Shown here: positions 3,356-55,068 of the stretch, in pieces
How the letters are laid out: every line of letters begins with the position of its first letter
Numbering within the stretch: position 1 is the stretch's first letter
Assembly: GCA_002104905.1 (NCBI GenBank)
Contig: MCFE01000007.1
Span: 186,001 to 250,000, forward strand
Reading direction: 5' to 3'
DNA from: Basidiobolus meristosporus CBS 931.73
Taxonomy: Eukaryota > Fungi > Basidiobolomycota
DNA length: 64,000 bases
Notes under the pieces: generated by a model
Seen by the model: the letters and a program-made list of their open reading frames with translations, nothing else
The model's database searches: none
What the model was told of the DNA's origin: nothing
Position numbers and translations under genes: made by a program

Positions 3356-5726
3356 ATGACCCATATACAGAGAAGCTTGCTATCGCTTTCACCATTTGAC
3401 TACAAAGTAAATAATTTGAAATATGAGGCCTTTCGCTCTCCCCTCAGCCCGATATCTGCAACGTTTGAAATTTTGAAAGCCCAGTTGGAAGATGAGCAAG
3501 ATATAATTCAGAATTCCACTCTGACAAGAGCCCAAATAGTACACAAACTGACAAGTATCCTGCGGAGAGCCGCCTCTAATGGAGACTCACTCAAAGTAAC
3601 GAAATTGCTGCAAGTGGCGCGTGACTATATTGAGATTGACGGGTCGGATGAAGATGGGACAACCGCATTAATTTTTGCCTCGTGTTTTGGCTATACGAGT
3701 ATTGTTCAGACTCTTTTACAGAATGGCGCAAATCCTAATGTGGCTGATAAAAGTAAGCCTCAGTGATGTATCATTATCGAGCAGTGACAACACAATACTA
3801 ACTAAGTTTTTAAGTTGGCTGGACGCCGTTAATGTGGGCTACGAATGGCCATCAGGATGTTATAGTCGCTACTCTGTTGAAGTATGGTGCCTCCATGAAA
3901 GTCAAGTCGTTCAAGGGCAGGACTGTGACGGACTTCGCAAATCACTCACTTGTTAATGAAAATGGACAATATCAACGGATAATGGAAATTCTATCCGATT
4001 CAAAGGATGGGGCCAGTACTTTTATCAGCAACTGTGAGAGTGGCTATTACACCACGACTCCAGCAGACGTTGAAAGCATAGTAAGCAATAGCGATATCCT
4101 AAAAAAGATGGCAATGAATCAAATGAGAAAAAGCAACAGTCATTCGATGAATTTTCGTTTTAGTTACTACGGGGTAAGTACGACACGCCACAAGAGCACA
4201 GTTGGAGGATGGCTATCATCAACACCGTTGCTAACAACCTAATCGCAACCAACTAGGATTTCGAAGATAGCATATACGATTTTTCATGGGAAACGATTCA
4301 GCCTCACCAGATGTTTGTGTTCACATACGGAGCGCTCGATATGTTGCTTGACAAGATAATAGTGGAGATTCAGCCACAGCACTCAGGAAAACAGAAATTC
4401 CTTCCTGCCAATATACTGTTCCTAGCCGCTCGATATGTCATCTTTTTATCCGACATGGAGCTCCTGGAGGACCTTATGGCTCAATCATTTCAACGGATAC
4501 TGAGTGTTGTCAAGGTACCGATTTTCATTCAGGACTACTTTTTGACTTCGAAATATAACCCGATTCCAACCTATTTCCTCTAGAGGGATTCAGAAGATAT
4601 TTCATCCTTGGCATTCTGGCTTTCTAATTGTACCTTATTGTTGTATTATTTGAAAAAGGACTCCAGTTTTGTCACCACCGTTGTTGAGCATCAATTGAAT
4701 CTTTCGGAAATGGTCCATGAGATCTATCAGATGTTCATCCAACAAGTATGTCAACTTATTGACCATGTATTAGAACCGGCAATGCTAATTCATGAAGCCC
4801 TGCCAGGCATGGGTGATGTGAAATTTGTGGCCGAGCGTCGAAACTTTTTATTCTCTGGCAAGAAGACCTTTACACCCCCGCCCACATCACGAACCAACCA
4901 ATACACATCTCGACGCAAAGCACAAACGGCAAACCGACATAACGGCAATACGCAATCGATACCGACTCCGAAGGCACTATGCTGTGTGTTATCGTCTACA
5001 CTCATAATCCTTCACTCGTACGAGGTTCATCCAACGATCATCCATTCGACATTAAATCAGCTATTTTACTACATATCTGCCGAGATCTTTAACCTGGTGT
5101 TAACAACCAAAGAGTACTGCTGTAGAATCAAGGCTATGCAAGTTCGAATGAATCTCTCGGTGATCGAAGATTGGGTTCACGCCAATCGGCTGCCCCAGAT
5201 CCTCAATCAGCATTTCAACTCTCTTGTCCAGATGCTTCAATTTCTGCAGTGTCTTTCTCAGCTATCGGACTTGATGGAGTTGATTACAACAACAAATGAC
5301 CTTCACTCTCTCAACCATTTACAGTTGTATCGCCTCACTATAAACTATAGATACGAGGTCGGGGAACGGCCACTCTCGGAAGAAATCACGCAGTATTTAG
5401 AGCAGGTGGCTAAAGACACCTGCAACGTGAAAATTCGTGCACAAAACGAGGCTAATGAGTTGGGGAAACGAAAGCCCAATGTCCGGGAGGAAAACGTGGA
5501 CACCATGTCTATTCATGGCGAATCAGGGAGATTGAACGCAAACGCCAATATAGAGGAGCTGGAGGAGCTAATGGATTCAACACATGCACTGCCATTTGCT
5601 ATACCAACCAACACCGAGATGTTATGTGGGTGGGGGCGGAGTGGAAGAGAATACACTCCTTACCTACCCGACAGCTTTTTAGAGGAGTTTGATAGAAGAA
5701 TGAAGCTACTGAAAGCCGATGACTAG
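3356..5726 (+). CDS. Ankyrin-repeat + Dilute (DIL) domain protein, spliced
   Basis: Ankyrin motifs DEDGTTALIFASCFG and, across intron ~3753-3814, DKIGWTPLMWATNGH. C-terminal exon 4608-5726 has DIL-type segments (QLFYYISAEIFNLVL, MQVRMNLSVIEDW, LNHLQLYRLTINYRYE). Further introns near 4150-4255 and 4516-4582. Confidence 0.85.
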
Positions 5727-7538
5727 AAAAGCAAGCATTTTGCTTACCTAATTCTTATTATCTTCTTGTACATTATTTTTGCAAATTATTACTTTGTCTA
5801 ACATAAAAACCATCAAGTCCGTACAATAGGCAACTTAGAGTTTTTTCTTTAATAAGTAGGCTGCCTGAACGGTATCTCTTTCAAATCGTGTATTCTTCAT
5901 GTTTATTACCTAATCTCTTGTCCTTGAGGACCATTAACAATGGACTGTCCAACCTATTAAGATACTAAACTTCGTATTGGTATACAAGATATGCCGGGAA
6001 TATGCTTGTTGCAATACTGTTCAATGTGTGATTTCCAAACTGCTTGTGACAATTTGTATCGATATGGCAGGCCTCCACCCGCAATCGAGGCCCTTTAGAC
6101 CTAGAACGTATGTTTCTGTGCGATAATTGACAAACATGTTGATATGTGGCATCACTCTGCAAATGCCTTCATTCTTTGCGTTTGATTTGCATCCAAAGCT
6201 CCGCAGCCGTTGCTGCCCTGATTGAAGGAAACCCAATATAGTTCTGGAGAAATCAGATCATATGATTCGAGATAAAACGTCTTGTCCAATGGAGTTCTCA
6301 ATGTCGATTTCCTCGATCGTAGTTATGAGGTTGGTGACGAGGGCTGCATCATCCGTTTCGGTGAAATGGGAGATCCATCAAATATCATGAATCTCCTGTA
6401 CATCGTTTCAATCACCTTGATGCCATTGGAAACTACCCAATGATTAATGGGATGAATTGTGCATCATTCCAGCTATCAAGGCGTGCTACTATTCGACAAG
6501 TTTCGAGGACGAGTGCTGGTGAGTGTAGAGCTGACCACCCAGGAGGTGAAGTGCAGCGCGTAGTAGATCCGGCCAAGGGTGGCTCTGCATGCACAAGGGT
6601 CTACAACACCTCTCCATGCTGAATACAGGACTGTTGATGAAAGGATTTCTGCAGTTCCCTAACTGGTTTCAGCAGACATGTTCTACAACTCATTTGGATG
6701 GTGTACCGTGAAAATAGCTTACTTCTGAGCATTTGCGCTTGGTCACACCCATCAGCATTGTTTAAGTAGTCAATCGATTTAGTATGGGCATGCCTTATTC
6801 AGCCACAATAATACATGAGATTCTGAAGAATATCACCTAGAGTACTGATGCACTCAAATCATACGACTAGTTGGATTACAAACCCCAATATTAATTAATC
6901 CTTCATCTTCAAATTTACACAGCATAATGGTTTTGCATGTTACATCACACATTCTATGGTCTTTCCTCAAACCATCTCTCCATAGCGGCCCTGACAATAA
7001 GCCTCCAACAACCTCCCTTCGTTGGCGTTAGAGTTTTGGCTGCCCTGGGCACCATGTGGGCACCTTCTATGCTATCAGACGCCTCTGTCTGTCTTCATAT
7101 ATGACGACAGATTCCATGGCCGACAGCAACTCTGTAAAACTCCTCCGAATCATTCGAGGCGTTTCAATTGCTTGATTTCTTGGAATTTTTCCATGATCTT
7201 CAATTTCCTGACTATTTTATTATTAATAACAAATTGTACTAATTAATTAAAGATTCATAATGAAATAAGCTTGGTCAAAACTTAATTTAGTCAAACATTT
7301 CGATAACCAGGTTTCGGCAGATACTCTGCGTTATCCTTTCCAACTTATCCTTCAACACAGGCTAGATTGCTACGGTCAGTTAAATCACCTCTCCTGCAGA
7401 CATTACTTAGCCTATTGTAATCTTTCGAGAGGACCATAAAGTTAGTCCTTCGTCGATAGCTGTGTTCGTCATCGCTTTGTCTCATTCTTTGTTGTTTCCC
7501 GTCAGCTCATAGAGAAGTAATTCAACGATTTTGCCGAG

Positions 7539-8644
7539 ATGGTTTTGTATAAATTAGTCGTTCTTGGTGACGGTGGTGTTGGCAAGGTAAATGACTATTA
7601 TCCATCTGCCTCCCGTTGTGGAGCCACGGGCTTCCAATCGTCATATTAACGGCCTCTTTCATATGGCATCTTTAGACTGCGCTTACCATTCAGGTTGGTT
7701 ATCCATTTTAACTGGCCAAAATATCTGGATTTCCAGTCCAATGTAGTTTGACCTTGCTTGCTATGACACCAATTTCGTGACTTGACATGCGGAATACACT
7801 AACTCTTCTTGCTTACTTTACTATAGCTCTGCCTAAATCACTTTGTCGGTGAGTACTGTATTGCACTCCGTTTGTTTTTTTCACAAGTTAACTGTGTTTG
7901 TTGATATTTGGAATATGTAAACTTTCAATATGCAGAGGTATGAGCCCTATCATCATAACTATCTTCAGAAATAGCTCGTGCATTTACTAGTGGTCATTTT
8001 AGACATACGATCCTACCATTGAAGACTCTTACCGCAAGCAAGTTGTCATTGATGAGCAATCTTGCATGCTCGAAGTTCTCGATACAGCTGGACAAGGTAC
8101 AGCTAGAGCAATTTTCTCTTCACTCCTTACTCCGCAAGTTATTTTGGTCGCAATCATCTATTTTCCAAGGAAAAAGCTAACTGAGTTTTGCAGAGGAGTA
8201 TACTGCCTTACGCGATCAGTGGATTAGGTTCATAAACAGGTTGAAACTTGCTTTGTCAACCTCTATTAACGCCAGTTTTACTTTAGAGACGGCGAGGGGT
8301 TCTTGGTCGTCTATTCTATTTCTTCCCGTTCTACCTTTGAGCGAGTTGAACGATTCCGCGATCAAATCATTCGTGTAAAAGATACAGACAGGGTCCCTAT
8401 CATGCTCGTTGGCAATAAATGCGATAAAATCAATGAGCGCGAGGTATCTAAAGAAGAGGGCCTTGGAATGGCACGAAGACTAGGCTGCGAATTTATCGAA
8501 ACCTCGGCCAAGACGTCGGTGAATGTGGAAAAGGCATTTTACACGGTTGTCAGAACGATCCGTACAATCCGAGAAGGAAGTAGCCGAACAGGTAGCAACC
8601 CGGGCGAGAAGAAAAAGAAAAAGAGCAAGTGCCTTATTTTATAG
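7539..8644 (+). CDS. RAS2: Ras GTPase (fungal Ras2-type), 7 exons, 191 aa
   Basis: Exons 7539-7586, 7676-7693, 7827-7848, 7936-7937, 8003-8096, 8194-8227, 8287-8644 total 576 nt. They give [43 protein letters not shown]...DTAGQEEY...NKCD...ETSAK...[11 protein letters not shown], with all G-boxes and a CAAX. Confidence 0.95.
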
Positions 8645-10899
8645 TTGGCTCCGTTATTCCGTGGCCAGCCTTGAATTCTCATCCTTCACTTTTTACCCAC
8701 TCTTGAGTTTAGTTTTGACTGTTATCCACCTGGTCACCTTTTTTCTTTGCAAGCAAAAGGTTAATTCTACATAGAAATCTTGGGTTCTTTGACTTGACTT
8801 CGCCTTGATTTCATGACCAAATTTCGTGAGATTCTTTCTCCTACATTTTGTTAATTTACTGGAGCCTTCGACCCTTTAGTCCTTAATCTGTTTTATCGTC
8901 CAAGGCTTTACATCCCATTTATTAACATTACTGATCCACATTAGTAACGTTTTCTTTATCATTACTCCTACAATTAAATCTATGTTTGTCCTTTAAATCA
9001 ATAGAAAACCGAAAAATCAAAAATAATAGACCTTTTAACGCGATTATGCTAATCATGAAAGATGGCTTGGAGAAGCCTGCCACTGATATTGGGAAATCAA
9101 TTCTACAGCGGATTCCACGAGACCTGGCGTAAGATGGTCCCGGGCCTTGTCACTGAGTGGTCTTACCACGACATACGGGCCTGTTTGCCTTGCTAGCATA
9201 TCCCCTCTCACATTTACCCAGATTTAGGTAGTTGTCACCAGCTCGTTGCCTGACCGCTATGGTCATTTAATTAAACAGTTGCTGGAACAGTTGATCACTT
9301 TGATATATCGCAACTTCAGCCGCCTAATCGAGTCTGCGTGCCCGTTTGGTGTACGATGAATGCTCATTCTTGAGTGCACTATGCAGCGCATACGGGCAGC
9401 TCGGAGTGTTTCTCCTTATGCCTGTTCAAGTAACAGTGATGTAAAGGTATTCACACGACTCTTCACTAGCAAATCAGAGGGATGGCTGGACCTCCTAAAT
9501 GCGTGATTTGGTTATCAGAACTATGCATCCAGGCTTGATCACAATGCTGTACTAAACACGACTCCCTCACGCCAATCAGTTCGGGATGCGGAGTTTAGCC
9601 TAAATAAGGACATCCAAATAGATGAATTCGAAGTTTCTCATCAGCATAAATGTGTATTCTTGTCTATGCACACATAAATCATTGCTGAGATCTCCCCAAC
9701 CAAGGGCGTGCTGCCCAGCAGATGCCGTCAATGGTGGATTTCTGAAACCCCATAAACCAAAATTAATTCCAATATACAGACACAACATCGAGAACACATA
9801 GTGATTTCTTTGTTTTGACTATTCAGGCTAGTGTGACAGGTTTGTAACCCACTGGGCACCAATTATGGCTCAGGGGCAATGCCAGTAGGAACTCAGTGAA
9901 GTCGGCATTCCAAATGGTACTCTTCCAGAGCAAGCACTGCGTAGACGTCTTCGCTCTCTCAAGCGCCTGGATCTGGTGCTTATAGAGGCATTCTAGAGAT
10001 GTGCATCTGTCTTGGTCTTAAACGAAAACACATATTAAGCTTTATCTCGCGCAGTGGATGCCGTGCTTGAGATTATCCTCGATGTGTTCCATGTTTATAT
10101 TTGGTCTCTGAGTAATATTCCGCTTGCATCATGATTCCCCGATATTATTCCTAGCTGATAGATCTGGTGATGACTTCGAGAAAGCCAATTCTAACAATCT
10201 TCGGGAGTGTTGCATTAGGATTAGGTTTCATGACTGTATGAGGTTTCGGCCTTGACAACCGTTATGATTAAATTGATACCTGTTCGAACAATGGGAGTGA
10301 CAGCAGTACCTACTGAGCTCGCAACGGCATTCATTCCCGGGATTACGAATACACCTGACTCTATACTAGTTTGGAAACAGTAATACCTAAACGCCAAGTG
10401 GATGTCAGCTTCCATAGCTTGCTTCATCAGCCTCGAAACGACGCATGCGCCACTGATTGGAGAGTAGGCTTAATTAATCTGAGTGGTTTTCCTAATCCTA
10501 AATCGCTCTGGGTAGCCCCTTTCCAACTCTAACCTCCTAAAGCGAATCCAGAGGTGTTGTGAGCATGTGGACTTCGAATCACGAAAACGCTAATTGTTGG
10601 CTGGGTTCTTGACCCCGAGATTCCATTCTGCGTTTCAGGAGAATCCCATCTGCCTATTTCCACTGACCAATGGCGATCATCAGCCACATAGCATCAAGTT
10701 TAATGAAAATCTCTCCAATCCGGCCAATGCTCCAACCTAGTGGTGCGAAATGCATTCGAGACGGTGCGCCCGAGTATCTTGTAAATACTACCCGTTTAAC
10801 CGATGGGATTACAGATTAGACAACAAGGGTTGTTCAAGGTAATTGAGCAGACACCGCTACACTTGGGTCGCTGGCTGCAAAATCAATCCCTATCTTGCT

Positions 10900-11200
10900 C
10901 CGTGGCCAATCAAGGCACAGGCGATCTTGTTTGTAGGCTAAGCCATCAGCGAGGTGGTGATACACGGTTCAGGCTGCACATGACCGGCCTTGACGTTATT
11001 GTTGCTGGATGAGCCAAGGCTTATAAAATTATTAATGAACAAGCTGAGTGGATACGCCCCTAGGGTTATGCTCCTGCCGAACGTAATCCCGACTCTAAAC
11101 TTCCACTCATCGTAATGCAGGGGAACGGAGCTTCTTTTCTCGAGATAGATCACAAGAGGCAGCAGGCCTGCGGTCACGTTGCGTGTGCTCATCAGCCCTC
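10900..11200 (-). mobile_element. Possible highly decayed non-LTR (LINE-like) reverse-transcriptase remnant
   Basis: Minus-strand peptides RSITLGAYPLSLFINNF and, in a shifted frame, HLADGLA loosely resemble LINE RT motifs (RQGCPLSP..F..FIND; ADDL). No intact ORF. Confidence 0.25.
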
Positions 11201-11895
11201 CAATCCAGTATTGTTAGTTTAGACTTTTGGCTTCCGAAGAATAAAATAACTACCTAGTCTAATAACATATCCCTATAATCTCGTTGGCTCTCGCTCAGCC
11301 AAATATGAAATCTCCTTTATGATTGATCATTCTGTATATCAACAACACTGACTACATGATTAGAGTTTGATAAAGCCTGGCCATTCAATTTGGCGAGATC
11401 CCGGTCATTCCATGCCAAAGCACAAGTGTTGTATCTGGCAAACCCATTCTGGGCGGCTGCCTTCCTCTCCATCATGTCAACGCATTTTCAATCGGGCCAG
11501 ATCGAATGGCTTTACAGGTTCCTGATCCCAAACTCGCCACCACCACTGCTACACGCCCTTAAATAATTTGCCGGCTATTTTTGAGGATAGCCCCTCACCA
11601 ACGCTTGATCATTTGGCTCTAATAAAGCCCCTAAATCAACGCATAATTCCCAATTCCTAAATATCGAGGTATCCCTATATGTAGAGGGCACTCATTCTCG
11701 GATTCAGAATCTCTTATATAAGCCAGCCTTGCTTATTACTCCCACCAGATCCAGATCCTCACAAGGCCATTTACACGCACGCTCCCCGCGCGAAGCCGCA
11801 CTCCGTGAATTCTATTCTCAGGGCGATAGTTGACTTCGATTTATCCTTGTATTACCTCACTATCATTCAGTAGACCCGCAGCCAGTGATATCAAA

Positions 11896-12965
11896 ATGAT
11901 GTCTCCGTGTTCTCCAAACGCCTCCATCTCTCATAGCCCGCACGTCCCTTTTCCTTGCGAAAGGCATAAAGTCCACTGTGCCAAATACTCCACTTCCTTG
12001 GACTCCAGAGGATATATACCCGTATACGAATTCACCTTCAGTGAACAGCCCATCCTGTGGGATCGCGAAACCGGCTATGTGTACTGGACTGGCATTTGGA
12101 AGGCAATGGGGCGGGAGAAGAGTGAAATCGCCAAGCTAGTGGATTCTAATCCCGAGTTGTCGAGGGAGGTAAAGAAGATCCGTGGGGGTTTTTTAAAAAT
12201 CCAAGGCACATGGTAAGTGATCTATTGTTTACCGTGATTCAATTCTCTCTTCTGACCCTGCCCATGGTTAGGCTTCCGTTCGATCAAGCATACGAACTGG
12301 CTAGAAAGACTTGTTGGTATATTCGCGATGACCTGGTTCCAGTCTTTGGTCCAAAATTTCTTCAAGATGTCCTAGAGCCATCCCACCCAGACTCATCATC
12401 CCGGGTACCGATATCGCTGACGGAGCGGAAGACGAAGGCTGCTGAACTGGCACTAGCAAAGCATAAAGCCAAAATGCTCAAGGCCAACATGGTGAGCCCT
12501 CCAGCAACGCCAATTCTTAGCGGGGAAGAAGGCTACGTACCAAAGAAAATTGCCAACAATCCAAAAAGAAAGCGAGTCTCCAAAAAGTCCCTCATTATCA
12601 ACAATGAAGGGGAGAAAGGATTCATTTCGGTAATTGCGAACGATGTGACACAAACCTCAATTTCATATCAATCACCGGTGACATATACCTTTCATGCCTC
12701 CGTATTCCCAAAGACAAACGCCATCAAGTCAAGACCAAACAAACATAGAAGAACTACTGATGAGGTTTACAACCAAGAATTCATCGAAGATCCTAAGGAG
12801 CTAAATGAGGCGGTAATAGCTAGCCTCTGTCTACAGAAGCTCTCACAAGATGACGGTTCGCGTCCACTGAATGAGATCATATGTGTAGCACCAAGCTCGT
12901 TTGTTATTGGACAGCATGAGTTCCGCTTTGTCAACGAACAATATCGCCTAAAAGCTCAATGCTAA
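11896..12965 (+). CDS. APSES/KilA-N DNA-binding protein (Xbp1/Afp1-like transcription factor)
   Basis: KYSTSLDSRGYIPVYEF...ILWDRETGYVYWTGIWKA...KIRGGFLKIQGTW, then intron 12213-12271, then LPFDQAYELARKTCWYIRDDLVPVFGPKF. Basic NLS-like KRKRVSKK follows. Confidence 0.88.
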
Positions 12966-44637: not shown

Positions 44638-45427
44638 ATGATCAGTATCAAATTAATCAGCACTGCTCTTGCTGCTCTCTTAGTGTTCGTCACATTGGCC
44701 GAGGCTCATTCTTGGGTAGACTGCATGGATTGGAGATTCAAGAATCCCTCGAAGAAGAGCTTCGACGATAATGCCGGTGACTGCTATGGCTTCGCCCGTC
44801 GTTTCCCAGTGAAACAGAAGGGCGGAAAATACATTGGTCAATATGCCTTTGGTTCCCTTGACTCTACTGGCGCAAGTCGCCACTACAAACAAAACGAGAA
44901 GAGCCCTGGTATGTACAATACCACACAACTTCAAATCATTTATGCTATAGAGCCTAATCATCATCGTTCAATCTGTAGATACATGGCCTGCTTGTTCAAC
45001 TGGCAAACGTCTCGGTGGTGATGAGGAGGTTGGTACCGATGAAACCAAAGCCAACCCAGTGACCAAAGCCTATGGAGGCAAGTGGGGACCAATTACTGTT
45101 GCCAAAGCTGGCCAACAGCTCTGTGTCCGCTGGCCCGCAAAGAACCATAAGAACGAGCCAAACAATATTGTCTACATTAACATGCCCCCTTCCCCAACCT
45201 CCAAGGACCCTACCCAAAAGGAATTGAACAAGTGGAACATTGCTAAGCTCCAATACGGCAACTGCTTCTCCGGCGGCTCCGACAAGGCTCGTTGCGGTGG
45301 TTGCTTCACCATCCCCAAGGATCGCAAGCCTGGAGACTACCTCATCCAATGGAGATGGATGCTCAAGGGTGATGATGGCAAGGCAGAATGGTACACATCC
45401 TGTTCTGACGTCCAAGTCACCAAATAA
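44638..45427 (+). CDS. Secreted His1 copper-protein / LPMO-like family, paralogue A (239 aa, no tail)
   Basis: Exons 44638-44908 and 44979-45427. Signal peptide ...LAEA then HSWVDC; WPAKNH; GDYLIQWRW; EWYTSCSDV; 8 Cys. Confidence 0.88.
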
Positions 45428-46330
45428 GCATTATCTTGCAGTAGTTCATGAGACATGGCATTAATAAGTAGTCATCTATCTAATTAGTCTAATAGTACGT
45501 AATACGGTTTTGAACGAACAGGTGTCGCATCTATATTTCCTTGCATAATACATTTGGCTGTCCCCCTCCTAGCCGTAATCAAATAAATGCCTGGTTTAAT
45601 TTAGCCTCTTGAATTTGCATCGTCCATCTGGTTTGTGCTATTTGAGGATGAATGCTATTTCCGACAAGTATCCACTAAACATAGCTGGAAATCCAAGTCA
45701 CGGAAATAGGATCATATCCTAACCTACCTGAGACACGTCAGGGATCTGCGGTATGGCTATTTATACAAATTTGACCGTTAATCAGCCAACCTTCATCCTT
45801 GGGTGCACAATTATGATACATGGGTGTGCCAAGTCGAAGGTCCTGCGACGGACTATTATCTAGGAAGACAAACACACACGTTCTTCAGGGAGCATCAATA
45901 CCCAATTGTAGTGGAGGCACACTTATTGTGATGGTGAGATATGATATTTACGCAAGTAGCTTGCTTTCGAACAGAGCTCCACAGGTCTTAAATAGCGAAT
46001 ATCATGGGATTAATACTGATATATTGAAAAATCAACCTCACGTTTTGGTAATAAGTTTTTATTCTTGCAATGGAGTGCGAAGCAATCATAGAGAGTACGA
46101 GACGTGGCATATAAGATCGTCAGGTTATCATTTATTGCTTTGCAGGTGTTAGAAAATATATACTGTCAATGGGCCATGCCATATTCTCTTGGGATACAGC
46201 CCATCGAGTATCAAATAAACCAAGTTATATAAGAGAATGTTGAATTTGAAGATACAATCGAGTCTTTTTTTGGGTAAATTGATTGGGGCAACACTTGGGA
46301 ATCCTTCATCTTTGTCCGTAGATGGCCAAG

Positions 46331-47491
46331 TTATCTTCTGAACAACTTGATGTTGCGACGAAGGTTATAGACGGATTCCTGATTGTAGGAGCGTTTGAAT
46401 CTCCTGTCATCCTCATCGTCATTGCCGTTCTTGCCTTGTCGATTTCCTCTACCACTGTTGTGGCGATTTCTCCCACCATTGCGATGGCCCTTACCATCAT
46501 TCCCATTGTCATTCTCGTCATCATTGGACTGTGTTGGCTTGGCCGGGCGCGATTTGGTGGTGGTAGGGGCTTCATTATTGTCCCCATCTGTATTGGTGCT
46601 CGTAGGTTGTTTGCTATTTCCCTTGTTACCCGAGGGTGTGGGTGTAGGTGTAGATGAGGAGGTTGCCCTACCTGGGGCATTCCCACCATTGCCATTGGTG
46701 ATACGGACATCCGAGCAGGATGTGTACCATTCTGGAACATTGTCGGAGCCATTCAGCTTCCATCTCCACTGGATCAGGTAGTCACCAGGACCTCGATTCT
46801 CTGGAATGGTGAAACAACCACCACAGCGAGCCTTGTCAGAGCCACCAGAGAAGCAGTTGCCATAATCCAGCTTGGCAATAGTCCACTGGTTGAGCTGGCG
46901 CTGAGTGGGATCCTGGCCCATTGGGGTTGGGGGCATATTTATATACACTATGTTGTTTGGCTCATCTTTGTGGTTCTTGGCTGGCCAGCGTACACACAAT
47001 TGTTGACCAGCCTTAGCTACAGTCATTGGGCCCCACTTTCCTTGGCCATACGCTCCGTCCACAGGGCTAGCCTTAGTCTCGTCGGACCCAACCTCTTCAC
47101 CTTCGCCGCCTTTGATGGCCTTTCCAGTAGAGCAAGCAGGCCAGTCATCTATAGCGGGAAATGAATGGAATATTAGTCGTTGTTTCTTACTACTTTGTCA
47201 TATAATAGCAATAAAATTACCTGGATGTTTTTCGGATTGCTTGTAGTGACGGTTTGGGCTGGTACTGTCCAGAGTACCGAATGCATATCTGGGAGATATT
47301 TGGTTTCCATCATACTTGACGGGGAATCGACGTGCATACCCTGCGCAAGTTCCTTCAGCGTCATCAAAGCTCTGCTTGCTTCCTTTAAACCTCCAGTCCA
47401 TGCAATCGACCCAGGAATGGGCTTCAATCAATGCGGGTAGCATCATGACGGTGCTAGCAATTGAGGCGACGATGAGTTTAGCGTTGACCAT
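46331..47491 (-). CDS. Secreted His1 copper-protein / LPMO-like family, paralogue B (362 aa, long G/N/D/R-rich tail)
   Basis: Exons 47491-47221 and 47148-46331. ...LIEA then HSWVDC, with the same core motifs and the same intron position as paralogue A. Confidence 0.88.
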
Positions 47492-49323
47492 GTTGGAATA
47501 CTGGCGGTTTGTCAGTAGAAGAGTTCTCCAGTGAGTGAAGGTAGTGCTTTGCAGTTAGAAGATATTCCAAGATTCGGTTGACCAGCGACCTTTGTTCCCT
47601 TGGTAGAATGGAAGACAAAATATTTGATGTCCTTAATGTCAGGCAGCAAGGGTTATATATACGTTGTAGTGGTGGGTAGAATTCTCAAATTTCAATACAA
47701 ACTCAAATCAATGATTCCCTCCAATAGATAAGCTTATCGAGCCATTGTCTGGAGTTTGGTGGAAATTGAGTTTGCGCCCTTTAATCACCCCCAACCAAAG
47801 AGGCATTAAACAACCTTCTAAATATATTCTATTCCCTGACAACGAACCCAATTGCACTTGACGATTAAATCGGCATTTTAGTCGAAATCAATAGGATTCA
47901 ATGACCCTCCAGTATACCAGTTTTCACTGTCCAGCGTAGTTTACACGCTGTTTGGCCATCCAATCAATGAGTACGGTTTCTATTAAATCATAAACTTACA
48001 ATTTAATAGTTGTCATCGAACTTTCCTTAATTATCTATCGACTCTGAAGAGGTACTACTTCTCCCGTATTGTGATGGCTTCCCTCTCAGTCTCACCCATT
48101 GTTTGTCCTACGCTAATGTATAGATTGGGTTTGGATAGGTCTTGAGGTTCCATTCTCAAATCCCCTAGAAGTCGGGTCATCAATTCATATATGGCCGTGA
48201 ATCCTTTACGCCCAAGTATCCTAGTCTTACTTTCAACTGGATCATAAGCCACTTGTAAAGAAGCCCTAATATAAGGTTTGAGAGCCATGGTACACAAGCA
48301 TAGCAAACTGGATTCTGGTGCTACAGCCGACATGCAAGATTGATTGCTATTATCTGGAAAAAATCGATGCTAGCTTCCACTTAAGGGAATTCAGCACATG
48401 GTGATGGTGCTCATCCCTACCATTATTAGTATAAGCCCAATAGAGGCCGTGGTACCACCATCTCATAAAGAGACTGGCCCAGCATTATTCTGGGAAGGGA
48501 AGTACTCAGACAAGGAAATGGTGTGAGATTGGTAACCCTAGAATGATATCTGGCGATTCAATCGGTAAGCGCAGCTTACAGCTGGAAACCGAAACTCAAA
48601 ATCACCTTGCTCCTTCAAGTAGGAATAACGAGAAAGCCTTGTTTTCATTATATCGTTGTACAACCTCTCAGCTAGGATATACGTGGGCTTGATAAAGACA
48701 TGCTGTGACACAGGTCACCCACCGCAATTATTCAAACACCATGGGGCAGTTCTTTGACTGAAAAACTGCACATTGCGGTATTCCGGGTGGGAAAACTTAT
48801 GGTTAGTTATTACTCATTCCAGTGGCGATATACACCTGTCAGACAACTATCATGCTTCTCAGGGACCCTATTTCTCAGATAAGTCACATCTTAATTGTAC
48901 AAACCCCAGGATACATCTTTTCTAATCTGTGGAACATTTTCCAAGAACTCGCCATTTTTTAATATGGTGGAGGAGGACTTACGAATTCATTCCGCGACCT
49001 ATCTACTTGCTTAACGGCTAACAGAACAGAGTAAAGCAATATCGAGTGCACCGATATGCCCAACCTCAATGGCCAGGATCCCACTCAGCGCCAGCTCAAC
49101 CAGTGGACTATTGCCAAGCTGGATTATGGCAACTGCTTCTCTGGTGGCTCTGACAAGGCTCGCTGTGGTGGTTGTTTCACCATTCCAGAGAATCGAGGTC
49201 CTGGTGACTACCTGATCCAGTGGAGATGGAAGCTGAATGGCTCCGACAATGTTCCAGAATGGTACACATCCTGCTCGGATGTCCGTATCACCAATGGCAA
49301 TGGTGGGAATGCCCCAGGTAGGG
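46666..49323. repeat. 253-bp perfect inverted repeat (arms 46666-46918 and 49071-49323, ~2.15 kb spacer)
   Basis: Base-by-base comparison by eye, from ggccaggatcccactcagcg to gccccaggtaggg, found no mismatch. Confidence 0.85.
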
Positions 49324-49391
49324 AAACTTCCTCACCCACTACCTTAACCTCACCCTTACCTAACATTACCCACCCTTACATCTTCAGGTAA
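49053..49391 (+). pseudogene. 5'-truncated fragment of paralogue B (3' half of the core domain plus a diverged, frameshifted tail)
   Basis: No signal peptide, no His1 and no WPAKNH. 49071-49323 is the reverse complement of 46666-46918, and similarity decays on both sides. Confidence 0.85.
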
Positions 49392-49999
49392 CAATGGTAA
49401 GCACAAGCAATAACGGAGCAAACATCAATAAACTTGCAACAACATTCGAACCCTACTACACACCCTTCTTTTTATCAGAGACACATCCAAACAAGCATAG
49501 GAGATGCCAGCGATTGGTTACTGTTGGGTCTGCCTTGCCAATTCAAGTCTCGAGATTACTATTAGAGGTAAGCAGCTACAAATTGGTCGCGCTACTTCGC
49601 TGGGTACGTAGTAACAATCCATTGAAAAGTCCCTTCTGGCACTAACGTCACCTCCGATCTCTCAACACCATCGGCCGGATGCCAAACCAGTTTTGGTTGG
49701 AAAATAGCTACCAACTGTTTGTAAGATAGTGATTATACACCCCCTAAGGTATCAAATGGAGTGCCGATGATTCCATGCACCTAATTGAATTCAAGCAGCA
49801 TAGTTTGAGACCGCATTTTATTCCAATGGATCATCCAACTGGGCTTAATTCTGGTTACCAAGGGCATGCAGGAAAATTTGGGAATTAATTACCTAAGAAC
49901 GAGTAACTGTCAAAAATTGATTCAGAAAGATGGGTGGCATTGATATTGCCCGAATGGTCATTCGATCACGAGCGCTTTCCTGGCTTACTTGCTGCTCGT

Positions 50000-50971
50000 T
50001 TAGTGGTTAGACTTCTTATGGGTCTTCTTCTTTTGGAGCTTGTGGTGACCCTTGGACTTGTGGGTTGGGGTGTGCTTCTTGCGAGTGCTGGTGGTTTTCT
50101 TGGTAGTGGGCTTGGTGTTTTTCTTTGAACCGGACGTCTTACTAGGGGAATTAGGCTGCGCAGGGATTGTCGTATTTCCTCTTCCTTCACCATTGCCAAG
50201 GCGAACGTCTGAGCAGGAAGTATACCATTCAGGAATGTTATCCGACCCGATGAGCCTCCATCTCCATTGAATCAAGTAGTCCCCTGGGGCACGATTTTGG
50301 GGGATGGTGAAGCATCCGCCACAACGCGCCTTATCAGAACCGCCAGAGAAGCAGTTGCCGTATTGGAGCTTGGCAATGGTCCACTGGTTGAGTTGACGCT
50401 GGGTAGGATCCTGGGAGGTTGGAGCGGGGGACATGTTGATGTAGACAATATTGTTAGGTTCATGTTGATGGTTCTTGGCTGGCCAGCGAACACAAAGCTG
50501 CTGCCCGGGCTTGGCAATGGTCATCGGACCCCACTTGTTTTGCCCGTAGGCGTTGTCCACTGGGTTGGCCCGAGTCTCATCTGCACCAACCTCTTCATTT
50601 TCACCATCTTTATATTTGTGCCCGAGTGAGCAAGCAGGCCAGTCATCTAGGAGAGAATAAGTCATCAATTTTTGCCCTTATCACCAAATTAACCATGGCA
50701 TACCTGGATGCTCTTCCGATTGTTTATAGTGACGGCTAGCTTCGGTGTCATCCAGAGAGCCAAATGCGTACTTGGGGCTAATCTTCCCTCCCTTGTAAAC
50801 CACAGGGAAGCGGCGGGCATAGCCGAAGCAGGTTCCAGCATTGTCATCAAAGCTTTGCTTGCCACTGTTGAAACGCCAGTCCATACAGTCTACCCAAGAG
50901 TGGCTGTCTACCACTAGTGGAAGTGCCATGGAGAAGGCGAAGATAACTGCAAATGATTTTCCGCTCAACAT
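50000..50971 (-). CDS. Secreted His1 copper-protein / LPMO-like family, paralogue C (304 aa, Lys/His-rich tail)
   Basis: Exons 50971-50704 and 50646-50000. ...VVDS then HSWVDC; WPAKNH; EWYTSCSDV; tail ends KKHTPTHKSKGHHKLQKKKTHKKSNH. Confidence 0.88.
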
Positions 50972-53900
50972 GAAGAAGATTGATGGGTGCGATGAAAAGT
51001 AAATTGTTATGTAGCCCTGCAACTGCTCAACAGAAAGGCTTGGAGTAAACTGAGACACATCGCTTGCAGGGCGACCGGCTTTTATAGAGTCAATGGGGCT
51101 CCGCCAAGCCCCTATTAACCACAATTAATTTTAGTCCGTTCCATGGAGCCGCCAACTTTTGCCGTGTGGATCCTGTGAGATGGGGGATTGTTTTTAGATG
51201 CACATTGGAGATCTAGCTCTCCGTCCTCCCACTGACCCTTCCCCGTTCTAAGGATTATCCAGCGTTTTCTCTAGGTCAACAACCAGTTGACCTAATTTGT
51301 TAATTTTGTCATGAGTGCGCACACTGAGCACCACGCTGGCTAACACTTGTGTTCCGTACGATGGAAAAATCGCAAAGTTTGTACCTCCAGGTGCTACGAC
51401 ACAATTGGACAGGTTTCTGACTACTTTATACGGTGTGAAGAACAGATGAGAAAAGACCTTAAAGCGGAACTAGGTGTAACCGTAGGGCCAATCTACGGAA
51501 ATTGAGTATCTGCAGCCTTTGCACCCGAAAGAGTTGCAGGAGACCAAATCAGCATGATGCCACCGATTTCTCTTCTCATGGATTTACACTTAATAAAATG
51601 GCTCAATCAACCGCTGATGAATATGTGAGACATCCCAAGCATGGAATAGGGAGAATCAGCCAATCTGAGTCATGAGATCCGGTCTACCTTCGATGGTTTA
51701 TCTTGGGAGCTAATAGCTACTCCAAGAAATCGGTACTTCTTGGACCAATGAAATCACCGATTTGCGGTTGGCCTCGGTTAGCCTCAGCGTCGCATGGTCT
51801 TCTTGTGAATACCGATGAATAGCTTTCGGTCTAGTCATTGGGTGAATGGCTGACCTCTCCAACTGCCGCTCATGGCGACTCTTGGGTTGGGGTTCAGGAT
51901 ACTCTTGGCTATATGGATGTTGCGTCAGTTGCCCTCCATTGGCCAACTCACTGGAATGTCGTGGCAATACTCGCACTGGCATTTGGAGCGATAACCGTGC
52001 ATCATAATGCACTAATGAAGGTACATACATTTCGTAATATGTGCCAATTTCTGGAGTGCAACTAAGCATCTTAGTGGTTTGGCACCGGCCCGATGATTGA
52101 CCCTTGAATACCCCACATGTTTGGGTACAGTTACTTTTGCCCAGCTGAATCGCGCACTGGGTAATGGTGCTGTGTCTGCAAACTTCAGGACTGGCGTATG
52201 ATTAACCCATCGAGAAAAGTACAAGCATCAGCGAAACAGGTAATCAATCGAATGGTCATTTGTTTGTGCATAGGGGCGAATGGTTAAGGTTTAGTGCTTC
52301 GTGGGTCTTGCAGTAAGACTAACTCATGTATGAATGGGGACAGCACTAGCATAAATTTCCAACTCGACTTCAACCGTCAGGCCTCTGGAGTATGCGTGGA
52401 GTACTTCATCTGACAAGGGAATCTTCCCCCACAATTGGCCTGATAACTGTAATGAAATCACCATACTGGGTGTGATTCGATCCGTGGTCATTTCATGCTA
52501 ATGATGCTTTATCGGATGTGCCTAGGCTGTTATGAGGTATTTTCACCAATTGTCAATCTGGCGTAGGTAGTTGAGAGCCATCCTTTGATACCGTCCGTTG
52601 CGAGCCAGATGTTAAGGTCAGACCAGACATGACATCTGGCCCCTCTCTAAATCCAGGTAAATGCTATGACCTCTGGCTTCATAGTTATTATGTAATGGCA
52701 TGCCACTTTTATGCAATGCAGTGTGGGCTTTGGACTTACTTCCCCACTTGTTAGCTCGCCATCCTCTATGTACCGATCGACCAGGTATGGTAAAGTTGCC
52801 GGGTAAAGTAGCAACGGCTGCACCGTTCCAAACATCCACAACTCCAATCTCGATTCGGTGGCCCATATAATACATCTCCTCTTACAGAAGTAGGTAGAAA
52901 TCTAACCGGATGTTTCGGCTAGGCCGATATCATTGCGGCGAGTCAAGTTACGTCCGATTGTGCCTATAACGTATCCATCCATCAACGTAGGTTGATCTTT
53001 TCCCTCAATTCTTAAACAATCTACACACATTATGAAGCTTAGGAGTTTGGATAAATTCTTGGCAATTTGACTAGATACGGAGTATGGATAGATTACCTTT
53101 GGACGCATCAGGAGTCTTTCGCTGCTGTAATGTGTTCAGATCTGCAGTGCTGCCTGTTTGCACCATAAATTCCAAGTCTGGACATGTTTCAGTCATAGGC
53201 ATGAATCAGTAAAATAATATGGGACTTGCATCCCAACCAAGCTTTGAAAAGACTGAGTGGTACTTTGTGATTCCTAGATCATTTTCCCGTACGTGATGAA
53301 AAGGCAGATATAGCCCCACTAGATATTTCTAAAGCCGTGGATAATTGGGGGAGAGTTGAGGGTTAAACTACCTAAAGCCAGCAGGGTATAATAGACCCAA
53401 GATTCAACCCTCACTATACCCCTTGCTGATGTTTCGCTTTGCTTAAGCCGTACTATTTCACCAACAGCACATGAAGTATTGCCTGATAAGAGTCAAGATT
53501 CTATCAAGAACTGCAGCTTGCCTTTATCAAGAGTACCACCATACAAAAGCATGAGTTTAGTTGTATTGGCTTATTTCCTAGTTGGTCATTTGTTAGGATT
53601 TCACACCCAGTAATTGTATTGGAACTCAGTGCGGCTTCTCCTACAAGTATAAAGACTCTATTGGAAGTCAACAGGTGAGCATCGTGTAGATGTTCTAGCT
53701 TTACAAGCAGTATAAGCATCTTGGTACCAAAAAACAAACATTCGGGCATCATACAAATCTTCTAACATTACAGATCATTTCTAGTGTTCCCAACACCTTG
53801 CAACATAGTTGCTGAAAAAAATAATTCAGCAAATGAATAATTTTGGAAGGGTGAGATATATGGTCTAAAGTCTCAACCATTTCCAGGCTCTTACCTTTGC

Positions 53901-54690: not shown

Positions 54691-55068
54691 TTAAATATCA
54701 AACACCCCATCACTCTCACTAACCAATGCGCAGCGATTGCTGTAGGTTTTGGTGAAGTGGGTAGGATGTCCGTAGCCATTCCCTTCCGCGGTGGCAGTGA
54801 TAGGCTCAAAGTTGTCGGTGCAGAAGGCCCCATTACTGGAAAGTTTATCGAAATATCCATTGGCCTTGTCGAGGGCGGAGCAGGCTTGTGCAGAATGAGG
54901 ATGTGTACCGCCCATAGGATGGCAGTCCAATACAACCTGTGACAGCCTCTGCCCAGAGGGACTTGACCCGCTGTAGATGGCAAGTGTGTAGTGTGCCGGT
55001 CCTTTTGTCGGTGGAGTCGCGGCCTCCAGTACGAGTGGATACAGAAGTATGATAGAGAGGGACTTCAT
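54691..55068 (-). CDS. Secreted Streptomyces subtilisin inhibitor (SSI, MEROPS I16)-like protein, intronless
   Basis: LDCHPMGGTHPHSAQACSAL...FCTDNFEPITATAEG...FTKTYSNRCAL....VFDI follows the SSI pattern (LxC.P.GGTHP....AC; C....Y/F.PVT.T..G; TF.N.C; VF.F) with four Cys. Signal peptide present. Confidence 0.85.
   Translation of the reverse strand: MKSLSIILLYPLVLEAATPPTKGPAHYTLAIYSGSSPSGQRLSQVVLDCHPMGGTHPHSAQACSALDKANGYFDKLSSNGAFCTDNFEPITATAEGNGYGHPTHFTKTYSNRCALVSESDGVFDI

Follow-up and report, generated by a model that had tools for sequence, protein, structure and literature searches.

Do three neighboring genes of the fungus Basidiobolus meristosporus CBS 931.73 encode a new kind of copper protein related to the lytic polysaccharide monooxygenases (LPMOs)? 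The genes lie in a 64,000-nucleotide stretch of the genome assembly (GCA_002104905.1, contig MCFE01000007.1, positions 186,001 to 250,000), which we refer to as the window and number from its first letter. A first-pass annotation of the window, made from the DNA letters, described three tandem paralogues and proposed that they belong to an uncharacterized LPMO-like family. We analyzed these genes, designated A, B, and C, using gene-model comparisons, family searches, structure prediction, phylogenetics, and public sequencing data. The overall best explanation of our results, which takes in mechanism and family placement, is that A, B, and C probably encode secreted copper proteins of the LPMO superfamily. 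That superfamily is known; what is new is a distinct, sizeable, and uncharacterized family within it.

Three intact paralogues share one domain

Gene A (K493DRAFT_332704, protein P0009) occupies positions 44638..45427 of the + strand and encodes 239 amino acids in two exons (44638-44908 and 44979-45427). Genes B and C are encoded on the - strand. Gene B (K493DRAFT_332705, P0003) spans 46331..47491 and encodes 362 amino acids (exon 1, 47491-47221; exon 2, 47148-46331), and gene C (K493DRAFT_332706, P0001) spans 50000..50971 and encodes 304 amino acids (exon 1, 50971-50704; exon 2, 50646-50000). A single phase-1 intron at a shared site had been reported for each gene, and this is what we found. 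The same codon is interrupted after its first base by a GT..AG intron in A (44909-44978, + strand, 70 nt), B (47220-47149, - strand, 72 nt), and C (50703-50647, - strand, 57 nt). The spliced translations are identical to the NCBI proteins K493DRAFT_332704, _332705, and _332706. Protein identity among the three paralogues is 69-82%, far above chance.

The sequence features originally described for the proteins were present in all three. A hydrophobic N-terminus ends in AEA (A), IEA (B), or VDS (C) immediately before HSWVDC, a second invariant histidine lies in an RWPAKNH motif, and a C-terminal strand pair is formed by GDYLIQWRW and EWYTSCSDV. The mature domain contains eight cysteines (C29, C49, C96, C139, C186, C196, C199, and C232 in protein A). 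Seven of these are invariant, and the eighth nearly so, in an alignment of 18 sequences.

The three products end in different ways. Protein A consists of a predicted signal peptide and the LPMO-fold domain, with no tail. The domain in protein B is followed by a low-complexity tail of ~120 amino acids that is rich in Ser, Thr, Pro, Asn, Gly, and Asp and becomes basic at its end. Protein C carries a basic tail of ~65 amino acids rich in Lys, Thr, and His. Disordered tails are common in LPMO families.

Protein A is predicted to adopt the LPMO fold

We built an AlphaFold2 model of protein A from the 18-sequence alignment. The model has a mean predicted local distance difference test score (pLDDT) of 84.4 and a predicted template modeling score (pTM) of 0.82, and pLDDT drops below 50 only in the signal peptide. 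We compared this model exhaustively, and independently of Foldseek, with 48,161 PDB chains. The best 25 chains were nearly all LPMOs or LPMO-like copper proteins (Z 11.6-6.9), and unrelated beta-sandwiches started below this block, at Z ≤6.2. AA10 (4OY7, Z 11.6), AA15 (5MSZ, 10.9), fusolin (10.5), and AA13 (4OPB, 10.1) scored highest, followed by AA9 (9.9), AA11 (9.8), X325 (6IBH, 8.3), AA16 (7ZE9, 7.3), and AA14 (5NO7, 7.3). The Magnaporthe effector NIS1 (Z 7.5) and a Phytophthora sojae protein titled 'Oxidoreductase B' (8S71, Z 6.9) were also matched, and no entry named AA17 appeared among the PDB structural matches listed. Structural identities to LPMO chains were 9-19%. No single LPMO family stood out, with Z-scores of 7-12 to all of them. 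Nearly all LPMO alignments started at His24 of the model, which was placed opposite the first mature residue of the target, its N-terminal histidine.

Foldseek returned 58 PDB matches at E ≤1e-3, and among the matches listed almost all were AA9, AA10, or AA11. Across the PDB, AFDB clusters, and Swiss-Prot, its matches were confined almost entirely to LPMOs, DUF7492 proteins, and 'Chitin-binding type-4' proteins. The AFDB clusters yielded better matches: a 'Chitin-binding type-4 domain-containing protein' (E 1e-13, TM 0.63), several proteins without a name, and two 'DUF7492 domain-containing proteins' (TM 0.55-0.60). Structure prediction and structure searches had been suggested as a check for an LPMO-like, immunoglobulin-type beta-sandwich. 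The model supports the LPMO beta-sandwich as the fold of protein A.

A candidate copper site is conserved across a large family

A word-based search recovered 19 relatives from Basidiobolus and Mortierellomycota. We also searched 1.84 billion cluster representatives with a family profile, counting members at 50% identity. This profile matched 476 proteins at E ≤1e-3, 199 at E ≤1e-10, and 45 at E ≤1e-30. The Mortierellomycota members come from Mortierella, Podila, Gamsiella, Dissophora, Entomortierella, and Actinomortierella, and the dictyostelid members come from Acytostelium and Heterostelium. Further members were found in MMETSP and Tara marine eukaryote data and in many soil and water metagenomes.

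Mean column identity was 21% in a mature-domain alignment of 102 sequences, and the sole invariant columns were His1, Cys6, Cys26, Cys73, His124, Trp194, Tyr206, and Cys209. His1 is His24 of the protein A precursor (codon at 44707..44709, + strand), which follows an A-x-A sequence at positions -3 to -1 and is the proposed N-terminal ligand of a histidine brace. His124 is His147 of the precursor (45146..45148, + strand), lies in the RWPAKNH motif, and is the proposed second ligand. Tyr206 is the last residue of Glu227-Trp228-Tyr229 (45386..45394, + strand), a segment proposed to provide a second-sphere Glu and an axial Tyr. We scored these positions over 183 sequences, counting those with a residue at the position. 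His24 was kept in 131/132, His147 in 170/171, and Tyr229 in 164/165, and position 227, two residues before the tyrosine, was Glu or Gln in 133/165 (81%). A histidine-brace copper site that has been retained, with an axial Tyr and a second-sphere Glu/Gln, would be expected to leave this pattern in the sequences. The family signature comprises an H-S-W N-terminus, a W-P-A-K-N-H motif, and a W-x-W...E-x-Y-x-x-C motif.

We located the mature N-terminus across the family with the -3/-1 rule, defining a hydrophobic core as eight residues with a Kyte-Doolittle mean >1.8. Among the 131 relatives in which we could place the conserved histidine, 109 have it 14-39 residues downstream of a Met start, preceded by a hydrophobic core. 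Within this set of 109, position -1 is occupied by A, G, or S in 105 sequences and position -3 by V, A, I, S, or T in 102, with V, A, and I making up most cases. Most of the other relatives are represented by gene models that are truncated or extended too far, and these too have the hydrophobic stretch ahead of the histidine. Cleavage of proteins A, B, and C is predicted after AEA, IEA, and VDS, respectively, directly before HSW. The -3/-1 rule thus gives good support to the prediction that the histidine is residue 1 of the mature protein. We judge it very probable that A, B, and C are secreted LPMO-fold proteins with a histidine-brace copper site.

Two features of individual relatives were also seen. 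Five Mortierellomycota homologues (P0011, P0012, P0014, P0015, and P0016) have a conserved C-terminal peptide, G-S-T-S-V/L-F-A-x-L-A-E-D/E, after a Pro-rich linker, and the Basidiobolus proteins lack this peptide. An intact, intronless member (P0034) is present in the Marchantia paleacea assembly (GCA_014180765.2; 2.98-Mb contig MUAA02000019.1, L003:10001-10720), with an aspartic protease gene of plant type (TAXi_N/TAXi_C) ~5 kb away. P0034 has 239 amino acids, matches the profile at E 9e-64, and keeps the His/His/Tyr set. It is a candidate for fungus-to-plant gene transfer or for assembly contamination.

Domain fusions argue against a pure copper-handling role

The alternative that survives best, which we consider unlikely, is that A, B, and C are non-catalytic copper proteins of the X325/Bim1 type that take up, store, or redox-buffer copper at the cell surface and do not cleave polysaccharides. 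It predicts the same fold and N-terminal histidine. X325/Bim1 proteins are likewise secreted and fungal, and LaX325 (6IBH) was matched at Z 8.3. The genes next to the cluster include no CAZyme genes, multi-copy arrays could suit metal homeostasis, and the His-rich basic tail of protein C could bind metal. This structural match is weaker, however, than those to AA10, AA15, AA13, AA9, and AA11, and it aligns ~135 residues of a family domain of ~215. The Pfam BIM1-like domain model (PF20238) matched none of A, B, and C at E ≤1. X325 proteins are anchored by glycosylphosphatidylinositol (GPI), whereas the C-termini of A, B, and C are hydrophilic and none has the hydrophobic end of a GPI-type signal. 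The Glu/Gln conserved two residues before the tyrosine in 81% of the family also speaks against a copper-handling protein.

Among the relatives, P0108 and P0161 have a GH5 cellulase domain after the family domain (Pfam E 4e-45 and 6e-50), and P0088 and P0165 end in a typical CBM1. These fusions tie the domain to polysaccharide breakdown and therefore argue against a pure copper-handling role. One further relative has TSP1 and EGF modules. A WW-like module ends 7/114 representatives (P0069, P0079, P0094, and others; E down to 5e-12), which is odd for a secreted LPMO-like domain.

The family fits none of the LPMO families tested

The first-pass annotation recognized no named family in the core of these proteins and suggested Pfam searches as a check of novelty. 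We ran Pfam scans on the exons and full proteins of A, B, and C, with matches reported to E ≤1. None of the three passed the cut-off of any model tested, and the only matches were sub-threshold ones to DUF7492 and AA9. DUF7492 (PF24320), the best Pfam match of the family, scored 23.1 bits for A and 23.4 bits for B against a cut-off of 27 bits and did not match C. These matches cover ~50-60 C-terminal positions of a 265-position model. Two other Basidiobolus paralogues, P0004 (27.6 bits) and P0005 (29.5 bits), just pass the cut-off. Among 114 family representatives, 42 match DUF7492 at E ≤1e-3 (best 6e-17), and the two families therefore overlap. The resemblance extends to structure, as seen in the AFDB matches above. 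DUF7492 is itself an uncharacterized fungal domain, and our literature search found no paper that mentions it.

AA9 (PF03443) scored 20.2 bits for A and 16.8 bits for B and did not match C, against a cut-off of 27.8 bits. Sub-threshold AA9 matches in the family (16.8-21.5 bits) extend over ~110-145 residues, many AA9 chains were found by Foldseek at E ~1e-5 to 1e-6, and Z reached 9.9. The family differs from AA9 in its low identity (11-19%) and in having a Glu-x-Tyr motif where AA9 typically has Gln-x-Tyr. LPMO_10 (PF03067) and LPMO_AA14 did not match A, B, or C at E ≤1. AA10 and AA15 proteins (ScLPMO10C, 4OY7; CBP21, 2BEM; TdAA15A, 5MSZ) gave the top Z-scores, with ~155-164 residues aligned from His1, but identity is 9-17%. 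AA13 (4OPB, 10% identity) and AA14 and AA16 (5NO7 and 7ZE9, both Z 7.3) do not fit the family either.

AA11 is the family most similar in its C-terminal motif. We searched PDB sequences with the single protein and with 18-sequence and 102-sequence profiles. These searches found the AA11 C-terminal motif within the last 40-75 residues (single sequence, E 0.004-0.02; 102-sequence profile, E 2e-4 to 5e-4), and no AA11 alignment from any of the three queries reached the second histidine. AA16 (7ZE9) came next in the 102-sequence profile search, at E 0.48. The W-x-W strand had been likened to AA11 and AA16, and W-R-W indeed aligns with W-T-W of AA11 and W-Y-W of AA16. The comparison of E-W-Y with the AA11 E-x-Y motif also held, as E-W-Y aligns with E-M-Y of Aspergillus oryzae AA11 (4MAH, chain positions 138-140). 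We take Tyr140 of 4MAH to be the axial tyrosine of AA11. AA11 proteins (AoAA11, 4MAH/4MAI; AfAA11B, 9EXJ/9HDG; 7P3U) thus share with our family the sequence P-G-x-Y-x-x-x-W-x-W...E-x-Y-x-x-C, and the structures align at Z 9.3-10.0 over 136-143 residues from His1. Like AA11, proteins A, B, and C are fungal and predicted to be secreted.

These similarities raise a second alternative, that A, B, and C form an outlying clade of an existing CAZy family missed by Pfam, most likely AA11, or AA10/AA15 by way of LPMO_10. We consider this improbable. AA11 proteins were the sole significant PDB sequence matches of the family profile, but the likeness is confined to the C-terminal segment, overall identity is ~15-18%, and AA11 (Z 9.8-10.0) does not exceed AA9, AA10, AA13, or AA15 as a structural match. 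Our family has an H-S-W N-terminus, and 123 residues separate His1 from the second histidine, with four extra conserved cysteines in between. The AA11 brace is formed by His1 and His60, so that the spacing in our family is about twice as large. A link to LPMO_10 is suggested by names and nearby clusters. The UniRef name of the window proteins is 'Chitin-binding type-4 domain-containing protein', which is tied to LPMO_10 and suggests an earlier automatic assignment to that model. ESM Atlas clusters of close relatives are named 'Chitin-binding type-4' or 'Lytic polysaccharide monooxygenase', and the nearest feature-space clusters include LPMO_10 proteins. LPMO_10 itself, however, matched 1/114 relatives (E 9.7e-4) and missed A, B, and C even at E ≤1. 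According to one comparative study, LPMO_10 is enriched in Zoopagomycota (bioRxiv 10.1101/2022.06.24.497490).

We also rejected two candidate similarities. PxLPMO1 of Podosphaera xanthii (PMC8035642), considered as a relative, has a His1/His52 brace and a structure model based on X325 or AA11. A weak match of PAKNH to a glutaminase-asparaginase (E 0.06-0.8) arises by chance from the sequence 'PAKRH' of a protein with an unrelated fold.

A third alternative, that the proteins are enzymatically dead structural, adhesive, or host-interaction proteins (carbohydrate binders or effectors) with an LPMO-like fold, could draw on the match to NIS1 and on the long, disordered, charged tails of B and C, which could mediate adhesion, but it is very improbable: His1, His124, and Tyr206 stay strictly invariant among highly divergent sequences, which marks a metal site that was retained rather than one that degenerated.

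Among the Pfam models and PDB sequences searched, we found no strong full-length match to a characterized family. The LPMO fold, the alignment of His24 with the N-terminal histidine of known LPMOs, the invariant His/His/Tyr set, and the lack of a fit to any family tested all support the original proposal of an uncharacterized LPMO-like family. One qualification is that automatic annotation had already half recognized the family through its UniRef name and that it overlaps weakly with DUF7492.

A proposed mechanism and family assignment

Removal of the signal peptide would expose His1. The amino group and imidazole of His1, together with the imidazole of His124, would hold one copper ion in a histidine brace. 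Tyr206 would lie axial to the copper, and Glu204 would act as a second-sphere residue, as in AA11. The reduced copper could then use O2 or H2O2 to oxidize and cleave glycosidic bonds of an insoluble polysaccharide. We lean, by a modest margin, toward A, B, and C being genuine oxidative polysaccharide-cleaving enzymes of this kind. Our leading guess for the substrate in Basidiobolus, and in Mortierella, would be chitin or another cell-wall glycan, because of fungal ecology and the resemblance to AA10, AA11, and AA15. For the relatives with GH5 or CBM1 modules, cellulose or related beta-glycans are likelier.

Several points weigh against this explanation. The cleavage site that would expose His1 is a prediction of the -3/-1 rule. 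Z-scores of ~10-12 at 9-17% identity between a model and known structures indicate that the fold is shared, not the function. Polysaccharide oxidation is not common to all LPMO-fold families; X325/Bim1 is an exception, and the title of the AA16 entry 7ZE9 itself reads 'LPMO-like'. The genes around the cluster provide no carbohydrate or copper context. Our literature search found no experimental or descriptive paper on the family and no biochemical results for any of its members.

We regard A, B, and C as members of a distinct eukaryotic family, about as far from AA9, AA10, AA11, AA13, and AA15 as those families are from each other. A bolder version, which we advance tentatively and think somewhat more likely to fail than to hold, makes them founding members of a new CAZy LPMO family. 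Such a family would have an ancient origin, with members in fungi, Amoebozoa (dictyostelids), and marine protists. Its fungal members would include the DUF7492-type proteins, mostly from Ascomycota, along with those of Basidiobolus and Mortierellomycota. It would have its own long, four-cysteine, L2-like region between the histidine ligands, and possibly a substrate or regioselectivity outside those of AA9-AA18. AA18 is mentioned in passages of two papers (PMC13431639 and PMC13353379).

The three genes are transcribed

We compared four public sequencing runs over positions 44990-50989. Two of them, X1 and X2, are DNA runs. No RNA run was listed when the whole cluster served as the query, and a query with one gene returned runs labeled 'DNA?', among them X3. 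In X3, coverage is confined to exons, depth is zero over both intergenic stretches, and there are no mismatches. X3 thus resembles transcriptome data for the same strain, with exons alone covered and introns spliced out. Its contigs contain the gene B joint 47148/47221 (72 nt skipped) and the gene C joint 50646/50704 (57 nt skipped), and the skipped segments have CT..AC ends on the + strand, which correspond to GT..AG on the gene strand. These data show that A, B, and C are transcribed and confirm the introns of B and C. Word depth in X3 was ~225-412 over exon 2 of A, ~150 for C, and ~7-18 for B. Contig depth is a poor measure of expression, and we therefore limit our claim to transcription.

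Amplification and genomic context of the cluster

The cluster contains a truncated fourth copy (49056..49391, + strand) that was absent from the paralogues first listed. It is annotated as a 95-amino-acid gene and retains the C-terminal half of the domain only, with both histidine ligands missing. An inverted repeat joins it to gene B: positions 46624-46918 and 49071-49365 are 95% identical over 295 nt, with a perfect core of 253 nt. In the DNA runs, contigs stop at the edges of the repeat, and depth over the 253-nt piece is roughly doubled. Depth over the truncated copy is 0 in X3.

A second array is present in the same assembly. Contig MCFE01000781.1 carries five family genes at 5452-12599, encoding proteins of 239, 252, 371, 344, and 238 amino acids, and this array also adjoins a HABP4_PAI-RBP1-like gene. 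A HABP4-like gene neighbors the window cluster too, and the array therefore exists in two syntenic copies. This arrangement suggests a block duplication or a homeologous segment of the window cluster.

We examined the history of the copies with a maximum-likelihood tree, which was rooted at the midpoint only. All Basidiobolus copies group together (support 100/98), and A pairs with the 238-amino-acid gene of MCFE01000781.1 (100/99). B clusters with genes of B. ranarum, leaving C outside this group (95/94 and 96/97). If this topology is correct, B and C duplicated before the two Basidiobolus species separated, and the array would be old rather than the product of a recent burst.

The other genes around the cluster encode a protease inhibitor of the SSI type, a VTT-domain protein, and an EME1/MUS81 protein. 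The inhibitor match (Pfam SSI, Streptomyces subtilisin inhibitor, PF00720) lies at 54691-55068, ~3.7 kb from gene C, and is unusual for a fungus. The cluster sits at ~222-243 kb of a 267-kb contig, and the array may be subtelomeric.

Implications for the family

To our knowledge, each new LPMO family (AA11, AA13, AA14, AA15, AA16, and AA17) has so far brought a new substrate or biological role. The family described here is easy to define by its motifs, has 476 representatives, and is found in lineages about whose polysaccharide biology little is known. Recombinant work should be convenient with the Basidiobolus genes, and above all with gene A, as they are short and transcribed and lack additional modules. 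Should the proteins prove active, the processing of biomass or chitin would gain an enzyme class. The family could also bear on the feeding of gut- and insect-associated zygomycete fungi.

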